Source of the DNA: Bugula neritina
Lineage: Eukaryota > Animalia > Bryozoa
Direction of reading: 5' to 3'
Length of the DNA stretch: 27,395 nucleotides
Assembly (NCBI GenBank): GCA_964035545.1
Contig: CAXIUT010000147.1
Span: 1-27,395 of the forward strand
Below, one piece after another: positions 1,108 to 27,395 of the stretch. A program made the position numbers and the translations under genes. The number at the start of each line of letters is the position of its first letter. Positions within the stretch are counted from its first letter, which is position 1. The notes below the pieces were generated by a model. It was not told where the DNA came from and did not search any database. It saw only the letters and a list, made by a program, of their open reading frames with translations.

Positions 1108-1510
1108 TCATAAGTATGGATGCACTGATACTATCTTATCATGCAATTTTTCATATTTTTATACAAGAGATTCATTTATGGTTGAGCATCAATACCACTG
1201 AAGTTGGCTTCTTGGTCTCAGCAGCGACTCCCAGCTCCATTCTGCTTCTAACATATACGTAAGGAATATGGGCATCTTCGCACATGACAGGAATGTGACT
1301 GATTACATCGACTGGGGAGACATCAGATGCTAAGATGACGATACCTTTGGCTCCTTTCTTGATGGCTTTGCATACGTCTTTTACACCTCTGCGAGAGCCT
1401 TTCTCGATTGAGATGGCGAGTTAGTTTTAAGATTTAGCACGGAGAGAATCATTGGATAGAGGATTGGCGATGGGCGAGTTGTAGAAGGTTTATTCTTTTT
1501 ATGCCTCCAT
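1108..1510 (-). CDS. NHP2: H/ACA snoRNP subunit NHP2 (L7Ae family)
   Basis: SPIANPLSND...RRGVKDVCKAIKKGAKGIVILASDVSPVDVISHIPVMCEDAHIPYVYVRSRMELGVAAETKKPTSVVLM matches NHP2. Restoring five single-base homopolymer deletions gives 135 aa ending VSVHPYL-TGA. Confidence 0.92.
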
Positions 1511-1606: not shown

Positions 1607-3966
1607 TCATTCTTGTTTGATTCCTGTTTCTAATTCTCCAAGTTTTGTCTCTAAGAGTTAATCTTGATCTGGTAATCTTTTCCATTTGCAGTATCTTTGT
1701 CTAGCTTCTTATCTATAGGTGGCTTCATTTCCTAAAATTTATCTGATTTTGTTGACTATCAGCATTAAATTTTAATACTCTTCTTCTTAATACTTTTGTT
1801 TTCTTTGAAGCATGATGACTGCTTGTTGAGTTCTTCCCCATCTAAGACAGTAGTTGGCATAATCCTCAAGAAATTGAGATTTTTAGATATTAGAAGTTGA
1901 TGCTTCGATGATGAGTTCATAAATTTCACAGGCGTCTTCGACCATGTTGTGGTGCTGGCATAGTTGGAGACCGTATGATTTGGGAGAAATCATTTCATTG
2001 TCTGGTAAAACTTTAAGAATGTTGACTATTCTTCTGATTAGTTAGTTTTTTGAAGTGATAGGTTGTTTAAGAGAATTTCTCTTTCATTTTAAGGGTTTCT
2101 TAGTCAGCAATAGATCTACAAATTGATTAGAAGTTTTTGTATGCTCTGATATAGCAATGAAGGGCTTTATTTTTGAAACCGTCCATAAGAAGAAGATCAG
2201 CTTTTGCTAATTAAAAATCACCTCTTTTTCTATTGAAAAATACAGGTTTTTGTGAATCTTTAAAATCTTGTTCATAATTTTTGAAGAATTTTAATATTGT
2301 TCAAGTAAATCGATGTTTGGGAAGAGTTTAGTGAGAATTTCTGAGGAGATTTGCAGAACAAATGTTTCAATAAAATCTTTTTTACTTTAAGTGAGTACAG
2401 TATCTATTTTACTGGGCAAATCAACCTTCACTTAATGAATTCTAATTTTATCAAGTTGATAAAGTTTATCGAACTATCTAAAACCTCTTTGAAGGACATA
2501 TTTCAAACTAGAGATCAGTTCCATTTCTTCATTATTAGTTGCAAATTTAGCCATACTATCTAACATACCTGAAAACTTATCAGAGTATCTTTTCATAGTA
2601 TCTTGAAATTCTTATGATCCCTCTTAAAAGGCACCTTCAGCAATTTCTTCAATCTTATTATATATTTCCAAAATGGCTTAAATGGCTTCAACAAGAGGCA
2701 AAGGCTAATAAGCTGCTTTAAAGATAGGTTCAATGCTTTCTTTGCTGTCATAGACATCATTGATCTCTAAAAATGATCTTATTTTAGCAAAATATTCTTA
2801 ATGGTTGAACGGTTTTATTAAATTTTACTGTTTTTAGGGAAGTTTTCCACATATTTTTGCCACTTGCTTTTGAAACAAGTAATGAGTACACATATGATAT
2901 CAGAAAATCCTGCATAAGAATTAATTTTTTCTTTGATTGCTTTGAGAATAAACTTTGTTAAACTTCTGTCATAGCAGCAAATTCTTTTTAGAAAGGAATA
3001 GAAATGATTGACTAATTCAGTTAATTTTAAACAGTGTCAAGGTTGAAGTATTCCCATTTAAGTTTTTAATTGAATCTCTTTTCAAAGTTACATTCTTCAG
3101 GTCCTACATCTTTTACAGCTGCTTTAAAAGATTCTATTCTGGCTGAGCTCAAAGAGTTTTAAAGAAGTTCCAATAGAATTTATTTATCTTCTACTTGGAA
3201 GAAAGGATCTTTGACTTTATCAATAATTTCTTACAAATATTGATAGTGATCTTCTGGCTTTTTTGATCGAGTAACAATCAATCCGATAGAGCTTTTCAAC
3301 ATTTCCTTCATTTCAGGAGTCAACAGGTTAAATTTAAACATATTAATGAATCCTCGAAAGGTTTTAATTAGTCCTTCTCCAGTTTCTTCTGAAAATCTAT
3401 GTTCATCCAAAACGATCAAAAATTTCACTTATCTAACTTGTTCAAAAATAGCTTTGAGGAAGTATGACACTCCAATAACTCCCACATGGTCTCTAGTATC
3501 AAAGTAACCTGCCATATCAATCAAACTAACTCCTTCATGAAAGTTGATGTGGATATTTGGATCTAGAGTCACTGAAGAAAAGCTACTTCCTAAGGCTGCC
3601 ATAGATTTATCAGAGCTATCAAGGGGATCAAAGTAAGAGTTGAGTTTTCCTTTGCCAATTAAAGGCTTGTTTAGCATCCAGTTGAAAGTTGTAGATTTAC
3701 CTGCTCTGGTGAGACCTACTTGAATGATGGCCTTTCTATGGGCTTTTATGATCTTTCTATCTCCTTTTAGAGGACTCTAAAGAGGTTTTGTTTAGTGACT
3801 TACATTATCAATATTACTTGCAAATCGAATAGTCAATTTATAGTAAGAATTATTATATTTTATTGATTACCGATAATCTATCTAAGTACTTATCTATAAA
3901 ATACCTAAAAAGAGATTAAACTTTTAAGATTTAATTGATTTCTACTATCTTAGCCTGATTAGACAT
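1607..3966 (-). CDS. P-loop GTPase (TRAFAC-like) with a long helical C-terminus, ~780 aa
   Basis: G1 VGLTRAGKSTT (~3690-3720), G2-like SVTLDP, G3 LIDMAGYFD, degenerate G4 LIVTRS. Track ORFs 3429-3677 and 3231-3428 join through an in-frame TAA. Start and stop are approximate because of indels or a possible intron at ~3800-3818. Confidence 0.75.
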
Positions 3967-6292: not shown

Positions 6293-7353
6293 ATGTAGGA
6301 CAATAGTAACAGATAGTTGCCTCAAATGAATCCATAATAGCAATAGCTACTGCATAGAAATGAAGTAAAGACATCATTTTCTAATTATACAAAAGATATT
6401 TTATCATAGTAAAACAACTTCTCCTTAAAACTTAAAAATAGATATTACCAACTGAATCAATAGCGTAAAAGGATGATGATGTAAGAGGCGGTTAAAAGCA
6501 ATCAACTATTTTTAGACAAAATAATTTAATACATAAATGATATATACCAATAGAAAGAGTATAAGGCTAATAATGAGAGTACAGCAAACAACAGATCAAA
6601 GATAAAGACAACGCTAAAGCAATTTTTTAGATAGTGGTGCAAAGAGAGTAAGGAGAAGTAAGACTATCGAAAGATGGTCGATAAGATAAAGAAATATTTG
6701 AAGAAGGGAGATAATGTTCTTGTACCTGGTTGTGGATTGGGTCGATTGGTATATGAACTGATCTATGCTGGATTTGGAGCATAAGGCAACGAAGTCACTT
6801 ATTTCATGCTATTTGGGTCCAATTTCATCATCAATTGTTGCTAGAGTAAATAACAATTCAAAATATATCCTTTTGTTAGTTCCACTAATTACTATAGCAG
6901 TTAGTAGGATCTTTTTAGAAGTTTTGTTGTTCCTGATGTGGCACCCAGTCAATAACTTGAAGGCGTTAGGAACAACCCAACTTTGCCATTTCTGCTGGAT
7001 AGTTTACCTAGATATATAGAGAGAGAAAGGAGTTTTTTTAGGGTGTGGCGACTTGTTTCTTTCTTGATACTGCTAATAATATATTTTAGTATGTCGATAC
7101 CATTAGGTCTACGTTAAAGAAAGGAGGAATTTGGGTCAATTTTGGTCCATTGCTCTATCACTATCGATAAATGACTAACTAGGTGTCAATTGAGGTGAGT
7201 TGGTAACAGCTGAAATCATATATAAGTGAATACTTTTAGTTTAAGGAGTAAGAAATGGTTTAGACAACTTATTGCCATGATCCTAAATGCGAGATGAATG
7301 TTTAGTATCAGTGTATAAGTTTTGTTTGTATGAAAAAAGATGAAAATAAATGA
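6293..7353 (+). CDS. CARNMT1: Carnosine N-methyltransferase (N2227 family)
   Basis: KIKTTLKQFFREW, VLVPGCGLGRLVYEL, GNEVTYFML, AGEFTEIY, VATCFFLDTANNIFEYVDTI, LKKGGIWVNFGPLLYHY, SIEVSWEQLK. One 1-nt deletion near 6975. Confidence 0.93.
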
Positions 7354-8281: not shown

Positions 8282-8488
8282 GACTGTTATTTTATCTATT
8301 AAAGTCAATAAAATATATTTAGGGAAATTAAATTAATATTAAGTAAGATCAATCAATAATGAATGAATTACTTTTATCAGATAAGTAATTATAAAAATAG
8401 CTATTAGTTAAAAATGACTTGAACTTGATTCTTTGTATAAGGTTCAAATATATATTTATTTTAGTTTAGAAGATCTCTATAATATTTT

Positions 8489-10052
8489 ATGTACCAATAA
8501 AATAATTCAACATTCCAAGCACCTGGTGCCCGTCTTGATCTTCAAGGCCCACAAATCCAGACCAATCTACAAAGTCCAGAATACAAACAAACCTAGGAAA
8601 CCCTCAATTCCAATCAAACAATCAAGATATCGTCTTCAATCCAACTTGCAAGGATCACATCTACAAAGTAACTTGAGATAGCCTTAAGGTCAAGGAAGAT
8701 ATCAATAAATTGAACTTCAATCTAACATGAGAGACCATAGATTCAGTCCAACATGAGAGGACCTGAACTTCATTCTAACATTCAAGGAAGTTCACATTTA
8801 CAGACTAATATGCAAGGTAGTTCTCTAAATCATTCGAATCCTAACATCCATTCAAGTCCTCACATCCTATCTAGTCCCAATCTCAACTTGAATGTCCAAA
8901 ACAACCAAATCAGAACATCTTAAGCTGACTTTTCCTTCAATCTCCTCCCAGCAATCTCCTCCCAGATATCCAGGCAGATAATAAAACAGACCTCTACTTC
9001 CCCAACAAGGATTCCAAGGAAACTTCAATTCCCAATAAAACAACAATTCATCAAACATTCCCCCACAATAGATCTAATCTTACATGAGAAAGAAACCTTA
9101 CACTCAAAATTTATATGGCTAAGAGTACACATACTCAGTTCTTCCAAAAAAACAGCAAACTCTCTGTATGAGCAACGACCGTTTTCTTCTTTTGAAAGGA
9201 TATTAGACAATTTCCTATTCAAATGATTTACCAAAACCAAAAACAGTGCCTTTTTCATCACTATCAGATATTCCCAAAGGCAAAGTAACTTCATCTTTGC
9301 TTGAAGTAGAGAAGTGTGAACTTCAAGATCAAAGTTTGATAATTAGATTTGCCAAAGACAAGAAGTTATGGCAATTTAATTGTCCATCTAAAATATGTGC
9401 GATTGAGTGGTCTCAAAAAATCAATTAAGCTGTTACTGTTGTTAACTAATTCAAGTTAAGTGGCATGCATTCTATGTAGGTATTTTTACGTACAAGAGGT
9501 GGAAAGCAGTCAAATAATTTTAGACCTCTTGAATACAGGCCAGAACCACAAATTGAACATAACTTTAACAGAGTTGATATCAATAGATCAGAAGAGAGAT
9601 TGGGTTCTTCAAATATTCATCCTCAAGTCAACTTGAATAAATAATTTAGCACTCCACCTAGACAAGTCAATGTTGATATCAATCATAAAGATCATGGAAT
9701 AAGCAATGCTTCTACTTTCAACGGCAATGCCAACTTTACAGGTTCGCCTGCTAGAATAAATTAATATAGAAGTCAAATTACAACCAATGTTGTACCACCA
9801 CCAGTTAATACTGATTTAAATATCAAGTATAATAGCAGTCTTAATACTACCCAAACTTCTGCAAATTTCAGCTCAAATGATGACAAATTAAGCATGATGT
9901 TAAGAAGTAGCAACTATCAAAGATATCCTTTGGGTGTTCCTCAAGGAGTAACTCAACATACTTTCCAAAGAAGCACACAACCAAATTATGAAATTGGAAT
10001 GAAGAAACAGGTCAGTACTGATTACGAGAACCACGATAGATACCTTTCATGA
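8489..10052 (+). CDS. PH-domain protein with N/Q/S-rich low-complexity flanks
   Basis: ~9150-9430 reads NDRFLLLKGYETISYS...PKGKV...LIIRFAKDKKLWQFNCPSKICAIEWSQKINEAV (PH-type strands and terminal Trp helix); ends ENHDRYLS-TGA. Start uncertain (8414 or 8489); a few indels. Confidence 0.7.
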
Positions 10053-10547: not shown

Positions 10548-10880
10548 ATTTGATTTAATATCATATTTATAGTAAAAATAGTCAAGAAGTTCCGTTGGTT
10601 TTAAAGATTTAATAATAAAATTATTGAAATAGAAGGAATATCGATTAATTCAGGATAAGTTTTAAAGTGTTTTAATATCATATCATTGATAAATATAATA
10701 TTGATAAAATGAATAATTTGAATATTTAAATTCTATTTAAATTAAAAAAGAATTTAAATAGTATAATCTTTTACAATTATAGGAGATAAAATATTGATAA
10801 ATATAAAAGAATTATTATGAATTTATCTACAAAATTAGATTAAATCAAAGCGCTAATTCTCATATAAATATTATATATTC

Positions 10881-13800
10881 ATGACCGAATCCCTCCCAAA
10901 ATACATGTTCCTGCACTAGGACTCAGACTAGATGAAAGATAAAAGAATTCAAACTGAAGTCTACTACGATGATTCCTCATAAAACATTGAAAAAAAGTAT
11001 CGCAAAAGAATACATAACACCATTAACAATAAAATCGGTGTCCACGACCAATCCATTCACAATCTAGGTAATATTTATAGCATTTAGAATATTCTAATCA
11101 ATATGGAGTTGTTCTCAGAGCCATGGAAAACGAAGTGGCTGTCTGTAAAGTGGAAGTGATGGATGGATTTTTGAGAGAAGGGAAAGAGGAGATGAAAGAG
11201 ATGGGTACAATTGGCTTTAGTGGTGAGTTATTTTTGTCTCCAACTGAAGAGTTGCTTGCTATTTGCACTGATTCTTTAATTCAAATTATGAAGATGTCTG
11301 AGCTACCTTAGTTGACTCTTTTGCCTATGCCTAATATCCATAACTGCAAACATTTCAAATGGCTTGGAAATCATCAGTTATTGGCTTGGAATTTCTAGAA
11401 AGAAGCATATGTAGTTAATATAGATTTGAATAACAAAGAAACTAAGTTTGTTGAAATATAGGGAATCAAGGAATGCACTGGAATATCAATTGTTGGTCAG
11501 AACTTATTAATTATGCAGAAGTTGGAGATCTGGGTCTATGATATGAAACTATCTCTCATCAAGAAGCTAGATATGAGCTGTTAATAACATGATTATTTCC
11601 TCTACGATTACAGCTATATTATTGATGTCTTCAGGATCAACATTCATAGTTCACCTTAACAGCTGCTTTCACGTTCTAACTTGGCTTTTGAAGCGAATGA
11701 TATCTTGGGTTTTGTGATGGTCTACTATGATGATGAGTAAGAATAGCCTGATCAGAGATGGTTGACTTTCTTTAAGGGTGACTTGATGAGTGGATAGAAG
11801 AATTTTAGAGGTAGTGAGATGTTTTATTCTGCACATGATAAAAGATCTTTGTATTACGATGATGGAGAGAAGTTATCTTTTGATGTTAAAGTGATGGATC
11901 TTGGGTATTCACTTTGTATTGTTTTAGAGAAGATGTAAATTGTGTATCTAATTGATCCTTTTTAGACTTTTTAGAAGTTGAATATATTTTAAGTTAAAGG
12001 AAAACTTGATTTCAAGGATTCTGAAGGGAATTTCTTTAGAGGAGTCACTCTTATGAGAAACATGATGCCTTCATAAAAGAAAATACCGGAAAATGTAAAA
12101 AATCCTTTACTTTAAATCATTGTGAAGGAATTTGAGGGAGAATTTATGACCTTATACTTTGCTGCTCAGGAGACCAATTTAACTATAGCTTATCCTCCTT
12201 CTCTTATTGGTATTACTGATAAAACATTTTATAGGAGATATGCAGTCAGTGTCTTAGAAGGAATCGATAAAGATAAAGATGAAGATATTATTGCCGAGAT
12301 GAAGAAAATCAAAAAGTCAAAGCATATCATTAGTGTAAGAGATAAGTTGTAAGGAAAGATGAAGAAAATATAGAAAGAAGAGATAAAGAAAGAAGAAAAA
12401 TAAAAAAAGATAATCAATGCATAATCTAAAAATGAGATCTCAAAGAAAGAATAAAAAGTAGAGAAAAAAGAATAAAAACAGTAATAGAAGAAAGAAGGAA
12501 GTTTATTTAGTTCAATTTAAAAACCTTTCGGAAGTTTATTTGGATAATGTAAAAAATAATAAAAAACCTCTCTTTTTAAAACTTCTCAATAAGATAAGAA
12601 TCCTTTCAAGTCAACTTAAAAATAAGCAACAAGTTTATTTAATAAATAAAAATCACCTCTTTTCAAAACTTAATAAAATAAGAATCTTTTCAATTCAACT
12701 GAAAAATAGACAAAAGAAAAGTCTATTCCTTTTAAATCTTCTTAACAAGAAAAGAATCCTTTCAAGTCATCTGAAAAATAATCAACAAGTTTATTTAATC
12801 AATAAAAATCAACACTGTTTAAACCTTCTGATAAGCCAATAACATCAATATTTAGTAAAAATTAAGGTGATTCAGTCGAAAAGAATGTCAATAATATGTT
12901 CAATCAACATCCTCCTATTGTAAAGTAACCACTTAAAAAAGTTGACTCACCAAAATAAACTAAATCTGTTCTTCAAGATAAAGTAAAGTAAGAGTCGAAT
13001 CCTGGAGGAAGTTTATTTAGTAAAGGAGGAGCTTTCAATATACCAAAATCTGATCAAATAAAGAAGGAATAAGATAATTCTCTTTTTAAAGATAATAAAA
13101 ACAAATCTAGTTCACTTTTTGGTTAAAGTTCTACTGATACAGGTAGTTCTCTTTTTAAATCCAAGCCTAATGAATCTACTTAGCTTTTTAGCAATAAAGA
13201 TAATGCTCCTTTAGTTACTAAACCAGTGACTCCTTTAGTACCCTTTTTTGGAAATAAAAATCAAATGTCATAAATAAAATAGTAAAAATAGGAATAAAAA
13301 TCATCTTTTTCAAATTCTAATAAAATAATAGATAAATATTTTGATAAAAAAGAGGATAAAAAAGATCTTTTCCAAGCAAAGCCTTTTGGAATACCTAAAA
13401 AAGAAGATTCAATGTATCCATAGCCATCACTAATAAATCAATCTCCTTTAATATTTCCAAAAAAAACATAATTTAATACACCTAAAGTTGAAGAAAAGCA
13501 ACCATTTCAAAAATAGAATAAATAGTTATAAAAAAATTCATTGAAAACAAAAGAACTAAACTTAAAAAACAAGAAATAGTAATTATTATTATAGATGAAA
13601 AATGGTTTATCTTCAATAAAAAAGAAACTATCTCCATTCAAATCATAAATAAATATAAAACCATCATAGCTACAATGGCCAAAAATAAAATAACTAATAG
13701 ACAACTAGATGTTTAATCTAACAAAAATATAGGCATTATACTTGGGAGGTCCTTTAAGCAAAATATTACAAAAAGCATAATCAGCTCGTCACTTATATAC

Positions 13801-16321
13801 GAAATACTAATGGATATTTTCTTAAAATCATAAGCTAAATATCAAATAAATATAGAAGCAACTTAATTAGTTGGAATAGTAATTAAATAGGATACTGTTT
13901 TTTAAAAATGTTATCAATCCACCTAAAATAAAACGATCCAATAATAACAGGAGTAGTAGAAGTTAGAAATTGCCTGATACTGATGCTAATTTTAGCAATC
14001 TAAGAGACGTGTTTAGTGATAGGTAAGAGGATTTGTAGAAGTAGTTGGAGTAGCTTCATGCTATTTTGGTTGAGATGGATATGAAGGCTAGGAAGATAGA
14101 TCAAAAAGGAAGTCAAATAAGTCATAAATCTAGGAAGAGCTATGATTTTGGTGGGTTTAAAATGCAATATCAATAAGAATCAAAACTATCCAAAGTTAAT
14201 AGTTATCAATTGTAGCAATCAAAAATCATTTAAACATAACCATTGATAGTTAGAATTAAATAGTTCAATTCTAAACCTAGATTTACTTTGCCACTGTTCA
14301 AAGTATCATTACCTAAAGATTAAATACCTGGTCCATCAAAAACAACCCAAAATATCGTTCCAAATCCAAAATTGCCATCGAATCAATCATTTTCTTCAAT
14401 GAATCAATCTAAAGGTCTTACTATATCTAAGTAAAAGGTGGCGATACCGATGGTCAATCCAAAAATACCAACTTTGCTATAAAAGGATGCTATATCCGAG
14501 TAGGTACTATCTCAATCTGATTTTGAGGATGATGATGATTTGCCTGTCCCTCAGGCTACTCGACAGATATCTAAGATAGATAAGTAGGATAGCGTTAAAA
14601 TAGATAGTTCTAAGGAAAGGAAAATATTTGTTATTCAGAAAGAGAATAAAGTTGGATTATTTGAAGGAGATAAGCAGTAGTTTAAAAGTAAAGGAGAATA
14701 GAATAATTAAAAAGTTAAAGATCAGAGAGAGGTTAAGAGTTAAAAGAAATAAAATACTCTTTTTGGGAGTAAATAAGGTGATATATTTGGTAATAATCTG
14801 CCTCGTCTTTTCACTGATAATAAAAAAGTTGAAGAGAAGAATGATAAGAAAGATTAATCTAAGAAAGGATCTGACGGCAAGTAGTAAAAGGGTCCAGCAG
14901 GTTCTATATTTGGAGGTATTTCTTCAGTTGGTATTGATGGTGCAAGCAGATAGAAGAAATTTATACTTGAATTAGATAAAAAATAGATCTAAAAGAATGA
15001 TGAAGAACTTCTTTAAAGAAAGAATAAATTATAAGCTATGATGGAAAAGTAAAAAGAACAAAATAAAAAAGCATCAAATAAGGAATAGAAAAAATAGTAG
15101 ATAAAAGATGATAAAAAAGAAGAGAAGAAAGAAGATAAGAAAGATGATAAAAAGAAGTAGGTAGGTATAATTTTTGGTTCAGGTCAGGCTTAAACTAACA
15201 AAACAGGAGTATTACCATCAGATAAGAAAGATGGAGCATCTAAATCTCTATTTGATAACATAGGCAGTGGAGGTCCATCACTATTTTCAGTAGGTAGTAA
15301 CTAGAAAAGTTCAAAAACGGTTATAAAACCTGACGATAAATCTTCAAAAGTATCTGAAGATGCTACTAAAGTATAAAATAAAGCTGATAAAGCCCAATAA
15401 AATAAGTAAATTCCAAAAGCACCTTTATCAAATATTAAATAACAAAAAAAAGCATCAATGAGTGACGCATAAATCCAAAAGCAACTTCAAAAAGCTTTAT
15501 AATAGGCATAAAAAAAGTAATAATAGCCAAAAAATACTCTATTCGGCCAAAATCTACCTAAAACTTCAACTCAATCGATATCGACAGATAAGCCAGTCCA
15601 AAATGCTAGTCAACCTTCAGTAATTCAAAATGCTAGTCAGCCTTCAGCATTTAACATGACCGCTCCAAAGCAGCCAGTTGCTCAATTCGGTATGACAAGT
15701 AAATTTATGTCAACAGGACAGAACCAATCTAATATATTTGATCCAAAAGCTATGAGTTTTGGAGGATCGAACAATCCTTCTTTTAATTCATTTGGCAATA
15801 TAGCCAGCACTAATAATACAAGTATACCTGTTGGTAATCAAAATCCATCAGCTATTGTTTAAAATAAAACTGCTTTTAATAAGAATAGTAGTAGTAATTT
15901 GCTGACCCAAGCGGCAACCAATTCTATTCAGAATAATAGCAATCAAATGGCAAATAATTTGGCACCTCAGCAGCCAGGTAACAACAATAGTATATTCCAA
16001 AGTGGTCAGGGAATGTTTGCTGCAAATCCTTCCAACAATCCATTTGGTGGTGGCAATGGGAGTAATCTATTTAGTAACAGTGGAAATAGTGGAAATGGTG
16101 GTAACATTATGTAGGCGTCAACTAGTTTTGGTAGTGCATTTAGCCAGCCATCTAACCAGCCATCTAATAATAATCTTTTTGGTCAGAGCAATTCGATGGG
16201 CAATCAGAATGCGTTTAATTCTGGTTCAGCAGGTCAGTCTAATTTCTTACAGAATTTTAATCCTCAAAAAGCAAGTCAGCCATCGAGTGTGAATCCTAGT
16301 CTAATGGCCCCGCGTAAATGA
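10881..16321 (+). CDS. NUP214: FG-repeat nucleoporin, Nup214/Nup159-like, ~1,800 aa
   Basis: N-terminal propeller-like region with LEYSNQYGVVL and LFLSPTEELLAIC (cf. Nup214 LAVSNKYGLVF, LALSCDNLTLSAC); SLF/NPF/FG repeats; central coiled coil (REEDLEKELEELH); N/Q/G/S-rich FG tail ending SLMAPRK-TGA. The same frame holds at all points checked after one 20-nt intron. Confidence 0.78.
11068..11087 (+). other. 20-nt GT-AG intron (nucleoporin)
   Basis: gtaatatttatagcatttag; removal joins the ATG-10881 frame to the frame of track ORF 11123. Confidence 0.88.
12585..12825 (+). repeat. Imperfect intragenic duplication (156-nt offset) encoding KNPFKS.EKE.TSLFN.EKS.LFK
   Basis: aagaatcctttcaagtca..aaaaataa..acaagtttatttaat.aataaaaatca occurs at ~12596 and ~12752, with a partial copy between them. 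Confidence 0.85.
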
Positions 16322-16450
16322 TAAACCGTAAATACATATCATATAATATCATTGTTTAAGACATATTATCATTAACTAGCTTCAAAGATATAATAACCTG
16401 GCCAAATAACATAAATATCATAAATAATATAAATAAAATTAACTAAATAA

Positions 16451-16909
16451 TCATATATTTTATTTTCTGCTGAAAGATGCTAGACAACTATTTTTTATTT
16501 TACATTTATTATTATTTTTATTTATCTCCTTTAAACTTATTTTGGTGGGCATTCTTGATCCTAGTATTCCTCTCTTATTTTTCATAGTTATTGGTTATTT
16601 GCAGATAATTGAACATTGAGTTTGGGTAAGGCATGATTTCTTATTGAAAGGTGATAGTTGTTCTCTTATTCTTGATTCCTGCATAAAATTTATACGATTC
16701 TATCTTATTTACTAAGAGTATTAGGTGTTTACTCTCGTTTGGCTTTCATGTTGTATTTGTGATGAGTCAATCGAGTTGATAATAGATTAGTTCAAGAGAA
16801 ATGGTGAGGAGAGGGATTTTACTAATAGATTTTGTTTTGGTTTTATGTGCTAGGGTGTTTCAGGTGGGAGAAGTTGTTGGTTTAGAGATGATTTTCTTGA
16901 CTGGAACAT
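16451..16909 (-). CDS. Hypothetical protein, 152 aa
   Basis: Intact 153-codon ATG..TGA frame with TAR=Glu: MFQSRKSSLNQQLLPPETPEHIKPKQ...SFSRKENI. Confidence 0.6.
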
Positions 16910-17040
16910 TAATTTAAATTTATATAGGAACCATTTTTTATATCAATTATTACCTTTAATTATTTATTTGATATTATTTCTCATAAAAATGCTTATATTT
17001 TGTTGATTTATTTGATATCATAATATTTACTATAAAAGAA

Positions 17041-18055
17041 ATGAACGTTGTTATCCAATAACTATCAACCAAAACAAGTAACATCTATATCATATAGCTC
17101 TACAATAATTCATTGTTACTTTACTTGACGATGTCTGGAAGTACATCAAAACTGCCCATCCAATGAACGAAGACAAAATGATAGCAACCATTTATACTAT
17201 CTTCGGAAGAGTTCAAAAAGAATTTCCGATGGTTGCTTCTATCAGTAACCTATCGAAAAGGATAATCAAGGAGTTGAAAGAGGAAGTCGCTGATGTATTT
17301 ATTTACTAAATAAGAGGACTCATAAGATCATGTAGAAGAAGAAGAGCGAGGGATTGAGGTCGTTTATGGAGGGAATTAGTAAGGAAGAAGATCTGGAAAG
17401 GACGGGTAGTGAAGATAATCAATAAAATATGCAAAATTGGATCAAAAAAGTTATGCTTAAAAATATATCATAGCTTAAATAAGATATCATTAATGCTGAT
17501 TCCAGTACTGCTGAAGTTCTTTCTAATAAATTGGCAAGGACAGTATCTGGAAATAACAAATTACCATAAATACTATTTTTTGATTCTTTTTTGGCAAACT
17601 AAACTGCAATCAAAGCTGTTTCTGGATATAAAATCAGAAAGGTCGTTTAATCACCTAAAAATTAAAACTAAGTCAGTTTGTTCTAAAGTACCAAGATGTT
17701 GAGAAGAGCAAGAATTCTAGTTATCAGTGCTGATGCTATCCTTCGCAATGGAGGAATACTCTGTCTCAGTGGTGGACTCATGCTCTGTATTGCAGCAAAG
17801 GAACTAGGCATACCTGTCATAGCCATATCAAGGAGTTACTGTCTATGGTAGCATATAATTAGCGGTCAATAGGAACTAGTCGGTTCTGAAAGTGCTAGAA
17901 CTTGGTTCCCTTAATAAGATGAATTGAATTTCAGAGTGTTAATTGGTAAGAGATTCGACTACGTGAGTGCATAGTTAGTGGGATAAGTGGTTGGTGAGCG
18001 AGTGGGATGGTAGAGTCGCAGTTTGGTTGAAATATTTGAGTAATATTACCATTGA
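17041..18055 (+). CDS. EIF2B2: Translation initiation factor eIF2B subunit beta (divergent), 324 aa
   Basis: SISNLSKRIIKELKEE, ILVISADAILRNGGIL..SGGLMLCIAAKELGIPVI, FDYVSAELV, EIFEEYYH-TGA. Two 20-nt introns give a clean 325-codon frame. Confidence 0.85.
17078..17097 (+). other. 20-nt GT-AG intron (eIF2B-beta intron 1)
   Basis: gtaacatctatatcatatag; without splicing the frame hits TGA at ~17164. Confidence 0.85.
17295..17314 (+). other. 20-nt GT-AG intron (eIF2B-beta intron 2)
   Basis: gtatttatttactaaataag; removal restores the frame through to the TGA at 18053. Confidence 0.85.
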
Positions 18056-18091
18056 TTTGTAGATATATTAATCTTATAATAAATAGTATAA

Positions 18092-20350
18092 TCATGATTT
18101 ATCTTTGTTAGATTTATTTTTATATTCCATTGCGATTCTTTTGATCTAAATATCTAATAATAGGTACATATTATTAATCTTAGTCATCGCTATCGATAAC
18201 TATATTTTTTTTATCTTTTTATATTTTTTTATTTGTTTATTATTTCATTTTTATCTATTATTTTTTAGTCGTCGCAGGTAGATATATTTGGTCTTCTATT
18301 AGATATTTCTTTATTAGATCGTTGTTTTATTTTATTGATGGTTGCTATCTATTTTTCTTTTGCGATTATGGTTAATATAATGATTTGGTTATTTATTTCT
18401 AGGGGATGTGAGATGTTCGATCTGACCTTTATGCTTTTGTTTGGTATTTAGTACTATAGTTGCTGGGCATGTGTTTTTAAGTTGGTGGTGATTTGTTTTC
18501 GATGGGTCTTTCTGGGGATCGCTAGATGATTGATTTTTTATCATTGGGTGAATAATTTTATTTGTATTTTAGTTATTTAGGGGATTAGAGGCGATAGTTA
18601 TCGAAAGAGTTGATAGTTTTTTTGAGAGAGCTGCTGATATTGTTTTACTATTTTATTGTTTTGTCTTAATAGGGATTTATTTATTTGTAGGTTGATGGTT
18701 TTATGTCTTTGAATTGAGGTGATAAAAAGTTAGATTCCTAATTCATCTATAGATATTGTTATTCTTCATATGAATTTTACTGTGCGAATGATATGTTTTT
18801 AGGATCTTTTGCTTTGAATTATTTATTGGTTTTTTGGTTGTTTATTGTAGGATTTGGATCTGATGATGTCTTACCGAAATGAGGTTCTACTGGATAATCA
18901 TATGCCATCTATTGGTTGTATTGCTGATATGGTTCATGGCTATATTGTTGGTATGGGATCTATTGGTTATAGTTTGAATTCATGGGGTAGTTATTGGTTG
19001 GAACTGGCATGGGCATGGGCATGGGCATGTAGTTGGGTACATTTTTTTGAGAAGAAAGTAAAGCGATCACTGATTTCAACTATGCGCAATGGTTCTTATA
19101 TAGTTATAACTATGATTTCAGTCGAGCGATTTCATGGTCTCTCTAATCATAGCTTCTAGAACTGATGTTATCTATTGGTAAGTTGACATAATTCGGCCTA
19201 GATTGTACTGATTCAGCTTCAGACTACTATTTTTATTCTTACATTATGACCTCTCTAGTTGAGAAACGATGCACAACAGGAAACGAATCAGTGATCTCTA
19301 TACTAGACGAGATGGACCAGCGGGCAGCAGGTGAGATTTAGAAGAGATAGTTGGACATTTTTTTACAATTCTATTCAAAAAATATCAAAATACCTGTGTT
19401 GTTGCCTTTCATGCTGATTCGACGACGAATGCAAGGATCAATCAGGTAGTCAACTATGGTAGACCAGAGAAGAGTGTCTTGTTTGCTTGAGTTTCCTAGT
19501 TTACCTGCTACCCAGACACCGATCAAAGGGACAGGCTGTTTTTGGAAATTATGAGGTTCTAATAAGATTAGTTTATATGTCGAATCTTTTTGTGGAGAGA
19601 GTGAGACATATCCTGCTAGAACTTACTGATTGAAGTTTAGTTTGACTAATTTTGAAAAGGTTTATGTCTATGCGAAAGTAAAAGGAGTTATCTTCACTTT
19701 TCTTAATGAAATATCTACCTTAGGAAAGAACATTAGCCTTCCTATTTTCAGTTTCTTTTCTTTTTATTAGGCAATGATAAATACTCTTATTATTTTGGTT
19801 AATATTTTCCAAAGGTCATTGATTCTGCCCTGTTGCTCATCGATTTTAGGTCTAATTGCATTTCTTTAAGAAAGACATCTGAATTAATGCTATACTCTTT
19901 GTTGGGTTTTTGGCCTTCCTTACTCTCTCACTAAAGTCAATCCCACGCAAAAGGCGTCTTTCGAGGTTTGCATGGAACCTATATCGTCTGTTTATTCTGG
20001 GTGGGTTTACTGGAGACGAGTGAAGGGACAGTCTGGAGAGTCAGATAAGAGAGATGCTTGGAGAGACCGTTTGCTGCGGATGGCTTTATCTAGGAGAAGA
20101 GCGGCTAGTTCTGGATCTGTGTTAAGGACTAGTTCTGGAGGCCCGATGGTTCTTTCTGTGCCCTAGATATGATATTTTTGACTTTAGTTTCGAAGGTGTA
20201 TTGTTTGAATGTGATGGATTCGAAGAGAGGTTTGTTTGGTTTGGACGGATCTGGAGGATCGAGAGGTTGTCTGAGTATATTTCTGGAGGAAATGGACTTG
20301 AAGAATTACTACATCCAGACATTTCTATTTTTTTTGAATCGGTTGTTCAT
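18092..20350 (-). CDS. STIL-like protein (STIL N-terminal domain, coiled coil, STAN-like motifs), 738 aa
   Basis: GYVSLSPQKDSTYKLILLEPHNFQKQPVPLIGVWVAG...LLWSTIVDYLIDPCIRRRIS resembles STIL [33 protein letters not shown]...VWACCLRYIFNSSVQERV. Continuous frame after removing 20- and 22-nt introns. Confidence 0.72.
18146..18167 (-). other. 22-nt GT-AG intron (STIL-like gene)
   Basis: Minus strand gtacctattattagatatttag; removal brings the TGA at 18092-18094 into frame and avoids overlap with eIF2B-beta. Confidence 0.78.
20163..20182 (-). other. 20-nt GT-AG intron (STIL-like gene)
   Basis: Minus strand gtcaaaaatatcatatctag; joins the 56-codon first exon to the long downstream frame. Confidence 0.82.
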
Positions 20351-20431
20351 TATATTCCTATCTATTATATAAACCTATCCTAACTTACTTTAATACCAAA
20401 GTAATTCATTTAACAAAAGTAATAACTCAAT

Positions 20432-20496
20432 TTGGGTTGGGGTTGGGGTTGGGGTTGGGGTTGGGGTTGGGGTTGGGGTTGGGGTTGGGGTTGGGG
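20432..20496 (+). repeat. Internal telomeric tract (TTGGGG)n in right-end orientation
   Basis: One TTGGG plus ten TTGGGG units, about the same length as the terminal tracts; no adjacent CCCCAA tract. Confidence 0.97.
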
Positions 20497-23400
20497 AGTA
20501 CAGCGAGTAATGCCGATGCTTCTGTATTTGTGCAGAAGGCATTGAAAGGCATGAAATAGCTAACTCAGGCCGAGAAGACAATGAAGGGGTTGCACAATGA
20601 GGTCAAGGTGAGGAAGTTGGATGAAATAAATCGTATACTATAGATGGCAGTTCGAAGAGATCCTACTTCTGTTGCTGTATTCAGGTAAAATAAAATATTC
20701 ATCTATATTAAACATTTCTTTATTGAAAATGTTGCTAAGGCCCCTGCTCTTGCTTTTTTGAGATTGTTGCTGCAGTCTCAACAAGATTCTCTTATCTATC
20801 TGGTCAACAATATACCTATGATGGTGGTGAGAGTGTTGTAGCGTGATGACGGTCGTAAGGGCGGGTAGTGGGATGACGATGCGACGTAGGCTTTAAAGTT
20901 CATTGGTGAGTGGATAAGTCATATGCCTATGAGTATTCCTCGTATATTTGCCACTAGTATGGTGAGTTTGGGGGAGATGCCGGCTGTAATAGGTTTTTAG
21001 TAGAAGAAGAAAGACCATTTGTCTCAGCATATCAAGTTGCTAGTGATAGATATTTTATTGAATTTATCTGTAGGCAATTTGGATCTTTGTCTTTAGTCTG
21101 GAGGGTTTACTCTATTGGTTGGATCGATCACTGATCCGGCTGTTCAGGAGAGGAGTCAGGATATCCTGTTGAGGTTGTTGTATTTTATGAATGAGAGAAG
21201 GAGTCGATAGAAGATTTGGGTGTATGTGGATATTAAGAAGATCTTCAGTGTGTTTACTGATCTGGATTCTGTTTTTATTTAGTAGAATAATAGAAATAAA
21301 GGTAATATCGATTTTTGCTCTAAAATGCAAACCCAACTATCACTCAGTCGACAAGCTTTACTCACTCTTCTCAAAAGTTGGAATGGAATCATACTACTTG
21401 CCAACTAGCCATTGATATTGTCGACTATTTTATAGGCGTTGAAGCAGATTCCTAAACGCCAGGATTCATAGATCCGTAGAAATATATATACTTTGCTTGG
21501 CTAGTTACTCTAGATAGGTGAGGGTCTGTTGCAGGAGAATATATACCAACAATAGAGTATTTTTGTATGAATTTAGATGACTTCAGGGCTTCTAGTTTGC
21601 TGAGTTCTTATATAATTGACTTGTTGAGGTTGTTGATGCGACATGACTTGTTTAAGTTGTTGATTTAGTTGAGTGGAGTCGAAGAGAGGACTGTAGCTTA
21701 GCCTGCTCAGAAGTTGCTGAAGAAATTATCGATATATATGTTTAACTTTTTACCTGATGCGGCTAATTACATGGACTTCTTGATATCGGCAGGAACGAAA
21801 GTGGGTCCTGGTAGTGCAATTCTAAAGTATTCAAGTTCATTTATCGTGAGCAAGATTGGTAACTATGTGTTTGAAGACACCAAATAGCTTAAAAATTTAT
21901 TTCTTTGTGAGTTGTAGAACATATTTAATCCTGATTCATTTTTTGTTCCTTTGAAAAGATCGTCTGTGGTATCAGTTTGTAAAAATTTAAACTTCTTGGC
22001 ATATCGATAGATTCCTAACTATCGTCGCAAACTGCTAGATTTGAAGCCTATTCCTAAATAGCATAAATAAAATTTTAAATATTGGGACTGGAATGTGATT
22101 ATAGATTTGCTATCCTTTCCTGATGTGTAGAAGTAGGGGTCTAAGCCGGATGGCAATGACAAGTATCGTTAGTTTAAACTATTTAAATATTTGCTTAGAT
22201 TTTATTCTCCATTAAGAGGCAATTTTTCATAGCAGAAATGGTCTTTTGATAACTTGGTGTATATTAAAGCAGGTAAACTACTTATTCAGAATACATTGAT
22301 GATACCTGACAATTTGGCTTTGGTTCGTAATCCTCCTGAATCGCAATTCGAGTGTACGGTTAGTTTTATGGGTTAGTTAGAGAAGACTCTTTAAAATGCT
22401 TTATAGTTATCGATTAAAAATAGCTATCATTACTATTCTAATTTTTTTAAGAAGTTATAAAGACAGTTGATAGTTTGGATAGGTTCTTTTACGATGACTA
22501 AGGTAGGTTATGAGTCATTGATATGCTAGAATAACTTCTTTTAGATAATGTATAAATATATGAAATACAAGGAGTGTAGTTTTATGATAGGAGGTATTAT
22601 GTTTCAGATGGACTTCTATCGTGATTCTTTAGGGAAGAGATATAAATAGAATAATTAGGAGAAGAACATAATGGTGGGGCCTCGAACCTTATTGATTCGA
22701 TGTGTTAAGTAAGGATCCAAATATTTGAAGTTGATTAGCATAGAAATCATCAAGATGTTGTATCGAGGGGAATTGATTAGTTTTATTGACTAGGGTTTGA
22801 GGTTGTTGCTGTTGCTGGCCAGTTCTAGTAGTTAGTAGATTTGGTATCAAGCTATATAGACAATAGAGGAGTTGGTTAAAGACAAGCAGAGGTTATAGAT
22901 ATTGCTGTCTTTGTTGATCTAATACAACCATCAAAATGCATAAGGTTTTTAGACAATAAAAACAAGATTATCATCAAACATCTTTATCCGTTTATCAGGA
23001 CTGACTGAAGGATATCGTTTTATATAAAAGAGATATCCGATTTGGTTATAGCGATAGTATGAGAGATGGATGTCAAGCGAATCATCTCAGGCATATTTCG
23101 ATAATCTCTAACAACTACTGAACAATTGTTTGCATTATAGTAATAGGAAAACCCAGGGATATTGCATTTAAAATAAAAAGAAAGATTTGTTGGAATGGGC
23201 TTTTATCTATAAACTACCTTGGCTATTGTATATCAACTAGACTGAAGAGGTGCCATTGGTTGTAAAAATAGGTAATCAATCTGTTATCTTGTTTTCTTAG
23301 TTATAAAATTAGGAATACTAATTTAGATCTGTCAATAATGATAATATCATCAAAATATGTCTTGGAATGGGAGGAATTTATCTAGATCAAGGCCTCAATC

Positions 23401-24391
23401 CAGCTAAAAATAAACATTTTACCTCAATCAACCTCAACGACAACACACTAGTTACACTCTATGGTCAGTAGTATTACTGCTCATCACTAAATGGAGTCTC
23501 AGTTTATTTCTTGCTTAAACCTCAAGGAGATAGCATCCAGTAGTTGTCATCAAGTGAGGCATATGCCAATAGATATGACATTAGAAGGATACACATATAA
23601 ATAAAATTGAGTTCGTTTTCTGAAATAGAGGAGTTGCCTATCCATTTGATCCAGTAGTTGAATAAGACTGAGATGGGAATGGCATTTTTATAAAAGAAAA
23701 AACTAACTACTCACGCCTTGAAGGTCCTTGATCGCAAAGATAGTACATCATTGGATGTGCGTTCTGTGTTGTGGTCGTTGGGATATTATGGGTCGACTAA
23801 GGAGGGATTCAAGAAGTTGGTTTCTGAGGGAATTATTTAAAGAATAATAGATATGAGTATGAAGTCATCGATTTTGTCTATGAGGGGAACATGTCGTTAT
23901 GTCATGAATATGTTTTGTCATTCTTAGTAGGGAAGAAACTATCTGACTTTGAATCACTTTACTATCAATAAGAAGTTGCTATCATGCTATCCTACGGATC
24001 AGAATCTGTTATTTACTATCAATGATAATCCTAAGTAGCATATCAGTTGTAATTAATCTTTATGGAAATAATATTCTTCGTCTTTATTGCCTCTCAATGA
24101 AGGTATATTTATGTATATATAGTTGAATCTAGGCTGTTTGAGTCTATAAGTTTATTGATAAATAGTTTGTCTTCTAAGTATGCGATTGGACAGATAAAGT
24201 AGATGATAAAGGGAAGCAACAGATTGAGTTATTCTTTTGATTTGTTGAATAATGTGGTTTTGCTGATGAGTTTTTTCAAAATGAAGTATTAAGCCAGAAA
24301 AACTGTTCATTTTATTTTTGACTAGTTTTTGAAAAGTAATTAATTTGTCCATTAAACTTCAGGTAAAATCGATTATCCTCTCAGCAAATGA
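20497..24391 (+). CDS. RICTOR: RICTOR (TORC2 subunit), probably 5'-truncated at the telomere tract
   Basis: ALAFLRLLL, ALKFI...SIPRIFATSMVSLGE, SGGFTLLVGSITDP, KIFSVFTDLD, LLKSWNGII, LPIHLIQELNKTEMG, VRSVLWSLGYYGST, SILSMRGTCRYVMNM, ARKTVHFIFD. 1,285 codons after two 20-nt introns; first in-frame ATG at 20551. Confidence 0.9.
21557..21576 (+). other. 20-nt GT-AG intron (RICTOR)
   Basis: gtatttttgtatgaatttag; removal restores the frame. Confidence 0.87.
24103..24122 (+). other. 20-nt GT-AG intron (RICTOR)
   Basis: gtatatttatgtatatatag; removal restores the conserved C-terminal segment. Confidence 0.87.
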
Positions 24392-27319: not shown

Positions 27320-27395
27320 TGGGGTTGGGGTTGGGGTTGGGGTTGGGGTTGGGGTTGGGGTTGGGGTTGGGGTTGGGGTTAGGGGTTGGGTTGGG
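27320..27395 (+). repeat. Right telomere, (TTGGGG)n
   Basis: About 12 units at the 3' terminus, with one TTAGGGG and short TTGGG variants at the very end. Confidence 0.98.

Follow-up and report, generated by a model that had tools for sequence, protein, structure and literature searches.

The window analyzed here, the whole 27,395-nucleotide stretch of contig CAXIUT010000147.1 in the genome assembly of the bryozoan Bugula neritina (GCA_964035545.1), carries on its minus strand (20350->18092) a STIL-like gene of a peritrich ciliate, which is intact and under selection and whose 738-residue product begins with a domain of the STIL type. In animals, STIL initiates the building of centrioles, and we consider it probable that this gene encodes a peritrich member of the STIL family that acts in the assembly of the basal-body cartwheel. 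Downstream of its N-terminal domain the protein has a coiled coil, followed by a long stretch of disorder, in which several short motifs are shared among ciliates, and, at the end, by a Ser/Asp/Glu cluster with an amphipathic helix. Searches of Pfam, the PDB and a HMMER library, as well as AlphaFold modeling, were carried out on stop-free pieces of the gene, piece by piece; the joined 738-residue translation was used in local scripts only, namely for coordinates, MAFFT alignment, tblastn against fetched loci and shuffle tests.

A 738-residue frame at 18092-20350 had been proposed in the first-pass annotation of this DNA and proved to be real: once two introns are removed, 738 codons are read on the minus strand from 20350 to 18092. 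No TGA occurs in the coding frame of this interval, whereas the two remaining frames have 15 and 17; the STIL-like frame comprises 753 codons free of TGA. The coding sequence includes 54 in-frame TAA or TAG codons (36 TAA and 18 TAG) and has TGA as its terminal codon. The parts of the gene are as follows:

20183..20350, minus strand: exon 1 (residues 1-56), with the ATG at 20350
20163..20182, minus strand: intron 1, 20 nucleotides, GT..AG, which shifts the frame
18168..20162, minus strand: exon 2 (residues 57-721), with no in-frame TGA
18146..18167, minus strand: intron 2, 22 nucleotides, GT..AG, which explains the second frame change
18092..18145, minus strand: exon 3 (residues 722-738; coding 18145-18095) and the TGA stop (18094-18092)

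A paralogue on another contig of the same assembly (C29) is 69% identical across the N-terminal 450 residues, and orthologues were recovered from three JGI metagenomes (52-70% identity), from one further JGI metagenome (L010, 33%) and from one ENA metagenome (31%); over this range of 31-70% identity the orthologues share the same conserved blocks. The position of intron 1 is shared, to the codon, by the window, the C29 paralogue (20 nucleotides) and one of the metagenomic orthologues (L006, 20 nucleotides), and the site of intron 2 is common to the window and the C29 paralogue (24 nucleotides there). The start of the protein, M-N-N-R-F-K-K, is kept in both C29 and L006. Comparison with C29 over the N-terminal domain and coiled coil gave 0.16 for the proportion of nonsynonymous differences (pN) and 0.71 for that of synonymous differences (pS), which points to strong purifying selection; the pN/pS ratio is ~0.2 uncorrected, and the corrected value is lower. 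The existence of a paralogue and orthologues, the shared intron positions and a pN far below pS establish that the gene is real.

Wherever the family alignment sets a residue against a TAA/TAG codon, that residue is Glu 35% of the time, compared with a 6% background; for Gln the figures are 7% and 5%. This enrichment of Glu justifies translation with the peritrich code (table 30), in which TAA and TAG are read as Glu and TGA is the sole stop; the gene itself ends in TGA.

The case for a STIL relationship comes from the N-terminal domain, in which two regions can be delineated:

19236..20350, minus strand: N-terminal domain (about residues 1-365), which spans intron 1 and is the best-conserved part of the ciliate family
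19374..19622, minus strand: STIL_N core block, 83 amino acids without TAA/TAG, with the pattern GY..LILLE..PLIGVWVAG..W..Y

The GY/GVW core at residues 240-276 and the domain end near residue 365 are colinear with the 348-residue Trichoplax STIL domain. In Pfam, the sole match of the core piece is STIL_N (PF15253; E=7e-4, profile positions 208-267), at a score of 19 bits that lies under the cut-off of the family (27 bits) because only stop-free pieces could be scored. STIL_N is likewise the sole Pfam match of the orthologous piece from L009 (E=6e-4). The other nine stop-free pieces of the gene had no Pfam match, and the C-terminal, coiled-coil and subdomain-1 pieces of orthologues retrieved nothing from Pfam except noise (DUF5117, Spc29, E about 0.08). 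A whole-library HMMER search with the 83-residue piece recovered ten short ciliate fragments of the same gene, cut at TAA/TAG by prokaryote-style gene calling, along with a spurious repeat protein (P0004); it found no full-length named relative, and the ESM Atlas provided no usable match. For 4 of the ten fragments STIL_N is the top, if weak, Pfam match, and the STIL_N matches of the window piece, the L009 piece and the fragments all fall in profile positions 170-280.

A profile built from the fragments (A1), when run against 177,635 distinct PDB sequences, gave a single match, 5OI9 chain A (E=2.3e-6), from the crystal structure solved for the N-terminal domain of Trichoplax STIL (PMC5928214). 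With a longer profile of 180 positions (A3), 5OI9_A was matched over residues 203-300 at E=1.6e-6, the next match having E=1.1. Structural comparison agrees with these results: an AlphaFold2 (AF2) model of a piece of the L010 orthologue (L010:221-661; 147 amino acids, mean predicted local distance difference test score, pLDDT, of 61) has 5oi9/5oid as its top Foldseek matches (E=8e-4, probability 1.0), and VIA-align gave Z-scores of 9.6 and 9.0 for the same two structures. A STIL N-terminal domain had been proposed from the letters of the window alone, and this proposal is borne out both by profile (5OI9_A, E about 2e-6) and by fold (Z 9.0-9.6). The profile check against STIL that had been suggested, run here on pieces, yielded a match, with no unrelated family scoring better.

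Past the domain, the conserved blocks comprise, in order, an acidic linker, a helix of 35 residues, a loose Pro/Met tract, short motifs, and a terminal cluster with a helix. Those that could be placed precisely are:

19056..19163, minus strand: central coiled coil (residues 390-425), by heptad test and conservation
18975..19040, minus strand: Pro/Met/Tyr-rich tract after the coiled coil, loosely conserved and without PRxxPxP
18759..18797, minus strand: mid-region motif N-I-S-F-A-Q-E-N-S-Y-E-E-E, present in L006 and L010 and weaker in C29, with no known counterpart
18708..18728, minus strand: motif F-L-S-P-Q-F-K (F-x-S-P-Q-F-K in the family), conserved, with no known counterpart
18285..18329, minus strand: STAN-like KKYL motif (residues 668-682), the best ungapped match to segment 1 of the STAN of the animal host's STIL
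18095..18197, minus strand: acidic D-S-D cluster and C-terminal amphipathic helix (residues 712-738), spanning intron 2

The central coiled coil that had been predicted is upheld as a conserved heptad helix of 35 residues after the domain. In the window protein core residues occur at a/d positions with a frequency of 0.8 versus 0.16 elsewhere (p=0.006), and all four members examined share one register and lack Pro and Gly in this helix, with conservation reaching as far as L010. Further along, an E-P-x-F-G-K motif is conserved in the family alignment, and a terminal [IL]-D-S-D-[SD]-acidic cluster plus amphipathic helix is conserved in all four full C-termini. All three groups of motifs noted in the first-pass annotation, i.e. 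the GY/GVW core, the heptad helix with its Pro/Met tract and the C-terminal motifs, were found where it had placed them.

STAN is a C-terminal segment of about 90 residues that binds SAS-6 after phosphorylation. We searched for it by ungapped BLOSUM62 scoring against 5,000 shuffles, a test of low power with the STIL exons of the host animal as its sole reference (segment 1, ...A-L-A-L-K-Y-L-Q-D-D-Q-L...; segment 2, ...Q-Q-Y-L-K-R-Y-A-L...). In the window protein the best site for segment 1 is the KKYL motif (p=0.027), and segment 2 had no relevant or significant match there. The family form of the KKYL site is D-[LI]-I-x-K-Y-[LS]; of the motif in the window, the ciliate copies have just KY(L) in common.

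Homologues of this gene have already been annotated in ciliates, and the window gene is a further STIL-type member, in peritrichs. In Stentor coeruleus, SteCoe_3381 and SteCoe_12006 are annotated as 'STIL_N domain protein' with STIL_HUMAN as their best BLAST match (PMC9371601). Where that study tabulates the centriole/basal-body genes belonging to the oral-apparatus module, SteCoe_3381 bears the label STIL and shares a cluster with SAS6, together with which it is induced in oral-apparatus regeneration. The window protein resembles the Stentor proteins, compared here by annotation only, in being a ciliate protein that bears a STIL_N domain; unlike the peritrich of the window, Stentor is a heterotrich, of a different ciliate class. 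Our reading of the literature turned up no study on the function of STIL in a ciliate, and the papers on Tetrahymena and Paramecium basal bodies that we consulted name Sas5/STIL solely as an animal factor.

With animal STIL the ciliate protein shares the GY...LLL.DP...PL[VI]G[VI]W..G...W...Y core, a similar domain length, and the order of its parts (domain, coiled coil, disordered region and short C-terminal helices). It differs from vertebrate STIL in being about half as long, and its coiled coil begins ~30 residues past the domain as against ~350 in STIL. Unlike vertebrate STIL it also lacks the PRxxPxP motif of CR2, by which STIL binds the TCP domain of CPAP/SAS-4. Vertebrate STIL further has a C-terminal KEN box that mediates degradation dependent on the anaphase-promoting complex/cyclosome (APC/C), and in this respect too the ciliate family is unlike it, having no conserved KEN box: K-E-N occurs at residues 590 and 667 of the window protein, at positions that are not conserved, and is absent from L006. 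The ciliate protein also differs from STIL in that a STAN is not demonstrable in it, and from the STIL of the host in lacking a terminal L-P-K-F-L-type ending. In its shortness and its central coiled coil it is reminiscent of Drosophila Ana2 and C. elegans SAS-5, in which an oligomerizing central coiled coil is combined with a C-terminal SAS-6-binding segment; SAS-5 binds by its terminal helix, and the ciliate family might do likewise. We know of no description of Ana2 or SAS-5 with a STIL-type N-terminal domain.

By analogy with STIL and Ana2 in animals, the protein would most likely act when each new basal body first forms. In animals the STIL-type domain consists of two MPN-like halves and serves in protein docking, and in the ciliate it may dock the protein to a scaffold at the mother basal body. 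The central coiled coil of STIL, Ana2 and SAS-5 oligomerizes and, in animals, binds PLK4; the short parallel-type coiled coil directly after the ciliate domain could similarly make the protein oligomeric, and the conserved C-terminal motifs would be the putative binding site for SAS-6. We infer both the docking through the N-terminal domain and the SAS-6 binding through the C-terminal motifs from these parallels. A pathway independent of PLK4, as suggested in the first-pass annotation, would be a further inference.

A number of observations weigh against the reading of this gene as a STIL-family member of the basal-body cartwheel. Every single-piece Pfam score for STIL_N is under the cut-off, and the direct STIL match is limited to the second half of the N-terminal domain, covering ~100 residues (subdomain 2) only, with a profile for subdomain 1 (A2) giving no match in the PDB. 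The fold was assessed on a model of middling quality (pLDDT 61) that covers part of an orthologue just 33% identical; for a model of the window's own 83-residue piece, 5oi9_A ranked first in Foldseek at a level that is not significant (E=0.29, probability 0.84). Ungapped BLOSUM62 comparison of the coiled coil with that of host STIL (5,000 shuffles) showed no signal, and a phmmer search of the PDB with the L010 coiled-coil piece retrieved generic coiled coils only, none specific to STIL or Ana2. In C29, L006 and L010 the best site for host STAN segment 1 lies elsewhere than the KKYL motif (p=0.4-0.8), and PR..P.P and P..P.P, the signatures sought for CPAP binding, are absent from all five family members. 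Data on expression, localization or interaction for ciliate members of the family amount to the Stentor transcript induction only.

The proposal that the window encodes a STIL orthologue of full architecture holds for its N-terminal domain, covers the coiled coil as a structural feature that shows no specific similarity to that of STIL, and is unproven as a whole, because the STAN resemblance rests on one short motif; PRxxPxP is absent. Of the two STAN-like motifs that had been pointed out, the KKYL motif does resemble STAN in this protein, with the resemblance not being conserved in the paralogue or orthologues, and the second is not significant. Given that SAS-5 and STAN share only 12% identity (PMC4554922), a miss across such a divergence is to be expected either way.

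The alternative that fares best is that the protein is a relative of STIL by its N-terminal domain only, with a C-terminal half that is a ciliate invention, does not bind SAS-6 or play a STIL role, and has some other job at basal bodies or elsewhere. The lack of a detectable STAN in the paralogue and orthologues and of PRxxPxP would fit this alternative, as would the SFAQ.NSYEEE and F.SPQFK motifs, which have no counterpart in STIL, and the C-terminal pieces without a Pfam match. However, the order of parts equals that of STIL, the Stentor homologue is co-induced with SAS6, and even a bona fide SAS-5 is so diverged from STAN that the miss would be expected; we therefore regard this alternative as unlikely.

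A second alternative, that the protein is a generic MPN/JAMM-fold protein (akin to Rpn8, CSN6, Abraxas or BRCC36) or an Atg7-N-like protein whose likeness to STIL reflects a shared fold only, draws on the fact that the MPN and Atg7-N folds are distant look-alikes of the STIL N-terminal domain, itself MPN-like (PMC5928214), and that MPN and Atg7 N-terminal structures occupy the lower ranks of our fold searches. Each subdomain of the STIL N-terminal domain has the fold of a beta-barrel with a capping helix that is also seen in the MPN/JAMM proteins (Rpn8/Rpn11, CSN5/6, BRCC36/Abraxas and the Jab1 domain of Prp8) and in the Atg7 N-terminal domain. Yet the ciliate protein, unlike the MPN/JAMM proteins, has no JAMM metal-binding motif and shows no sequence match to them: the profile matches STIL alone, with no MPN chain at E<=10, and no Pfam JAB/MPN match was obtained among the pieces searched. 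In the comparison of the L010 model, the row after the two STIL structures is Prp8 with a Z of 4.4, the MPN proteins score ~4.1 or less and Atg7-N appears among the lower Foldseek ranks only, where probabilities are below 0.5 against 1.0 for STIL. Together these results make a generic MPN or Atg7-like protein very improbable. That the frame is no functional gene at all, but arose by chance as a TGA-free stretch of AT-rich DNA or is a pseudogene in decay, is hardly credible, for although TGA is rare at 30% GC and the window has many overlapping TGA-free frames of 150-400 codons, this one extends over 753 codons against 15 and 17 TGA in the other frames, conserves its intron positions, shows a pN/pS of about 0.2 or lower, and retains the same blocks in orthologues at 31-70% identity.

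Returning to a STIL-family role in the cartwheel, a more far-reaching version can be entertained tentatively, though we hold it doubtful. Together with the D-S-D cluster and the terminal helix, the KY(L) motif might constitute a true, highly diverged SAS-6-binding module of the STAN/SAS-5 type, such that ciliates would retain the complete STIL-SAS-6 machinery for starting a cartwheel despite lacking PLK4. Such a module would then predate control by PLK4, and some other kinase, acting on the acidic Ser cluster, could license the mass production of basal bodies.

The same assembly provides evidence for a possible partner of the protein, in the form of one further feature on a small contig:

G000:C264:5207-5479, minus strand: match to the SAS-6 N-terminal domain (53.6 bits), with six in-frame TAA/TAG

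Given these in-frame TAA/TAG codons, the same ciliate has SAS-6. Matches to Plk4_PB1 in the assembly are on the large host chromosomes only; the ciliate part is incomplete, so that absence from the ciliate is not implied. The animal's own STIL gene is at G000:C1:27345700-27352100 (loci L011, L014 and L012), is intron-rich and uses the standard code, and its exons encode the N-terminal domain, the coiled coil (one exon), STAN (two exons) and a terminal L-P-K-F-L ending. A hidden Markov model (HMM) of the ciliate family had no match in a six-frame translation of the 30 kb around host STIL (a search of low power), and when the ciliate protein was compared with the host STIL locus by tblastn, nothing significant emerged. 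Across the whole assembly the family profile found the window and the C29 paralogue, and did not find host STIL. Because host STIL has short exons and an intron interrupts the key motif, the reciprocal test with host STIL is powerless.

The assembly spans 216 Mb in 321 contigs, with the window constituting the whole of one of them (C156), and the following repeats were identified in the window:

4-69: C4A2 telomere repeats, left end
27321-27380: G4T2 telomere repeats, right end
20437-20496, plus strand: internal G4T2 telomere repeat, 86 nucleotides upstream of the ATG of the STIL-like gene

The telomere repeats, a GC content of ~30% and long reading frames that are broken by TAA/TAG alone and never by TGA indicate that the window is ciliate macronuclear DNA carried along with the animal sample. 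The largest contigs, which reach tens of megabases and represent an invertebrate-like rather than human genome, hold the animal host's own intron-rich, standard-code STIL gene (C1:27.346 Mb), so the window is a passenger, or contaminant, contig of the animal genome project. From these contigs our analysis drew, for reference, on the ~30 kb around that gene only. The STIL-like gene occupies the end of a minichromosome capped with telomeres, which that project assembled as one of its contigs.

The C29 contig has a comparable arrangement, with C4A2 tracts at 6-83, G4T2 tracts at 23352-23436 and an internal G4T2 tract at 8430-8525; in the window and C29 alike, the piece beyond the internal G4T2 tract has no C4A2 start. 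The internal tracts could stem either from two minichromosomes joined by the assembler or from alternative fragmentation isoforms. Positions 10843-20356 of the window are syntenic, in reverse orientation, with 22013-12524 of C29 (~9.5 kb, 68-87% nucleotide identity), with identity being 87% near 16863-18397 and 72% across the STIL-like gene; the two contigs are either paralogous chromosomes or derive from two related peritrichs in the sample. In the C29 paralogue itself, the frame changes within ~8 nucleotides past the Pro/Met tract (L005 2142-2151, G000:C29 about 13884-13893) with no recognizable intron, and a second time near L005 2609-2683, which could represent either assembly indels, unusual introns or the early decay of this copy. 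The L006 orthologue, from a JGI metagenome, has an extra intron of 19 nucleotides (1268-1286) in its N-terminal domain, between F-Y-P-K and V-D-I-S, that is missing from the window and C29, which suggests that a tiny intron was gained or lost recently among peritrichs.

The neighbors of the STIL-like gene in the window are ordinary eukaryotic housekeeping genes, represented by these pieces, and there is in addition one very long frame:

1175-1420, minus strand: L7Ae-family protein piece (E=3.5e-20)
3432-3776, minus strand: GTPase piece (weak match)
6662-6781, plus strand: carnosine N-methyltransferase-like piece (27.0 bits, at the cut-off)
10991-16321, plus strand: TGA-free frame of 1,776 codons, FG-nucleoporin-like in its C-terminal third
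17687-17848, plus strand: eIF2B-family subunit piece (E=2e-7), converging on the 3' end of the STIL-like gene
23694-23837, plus strand: RICTOR_V-like piece (weak match)

In the long frame, F-G and G-x-N-x-F repeats together with Asn/Gln are abundant in the C-terminal third (15527-16318); the pieces of it that were tried had no Pfam match.

The gain from these findings is modest, in that this domain had been annotated before, in Stentor, and routine annotation would most likely detect the gene given the correct table-30 translation, with only pieces having been scored here. A STIL-type gene is nonetheless present and under selection in peritrichs, and its conserved motifs offer an entry point, in tractable ciliates, to the trigger of basal-body duplication in organisms where PLK4 is said to be lacking.

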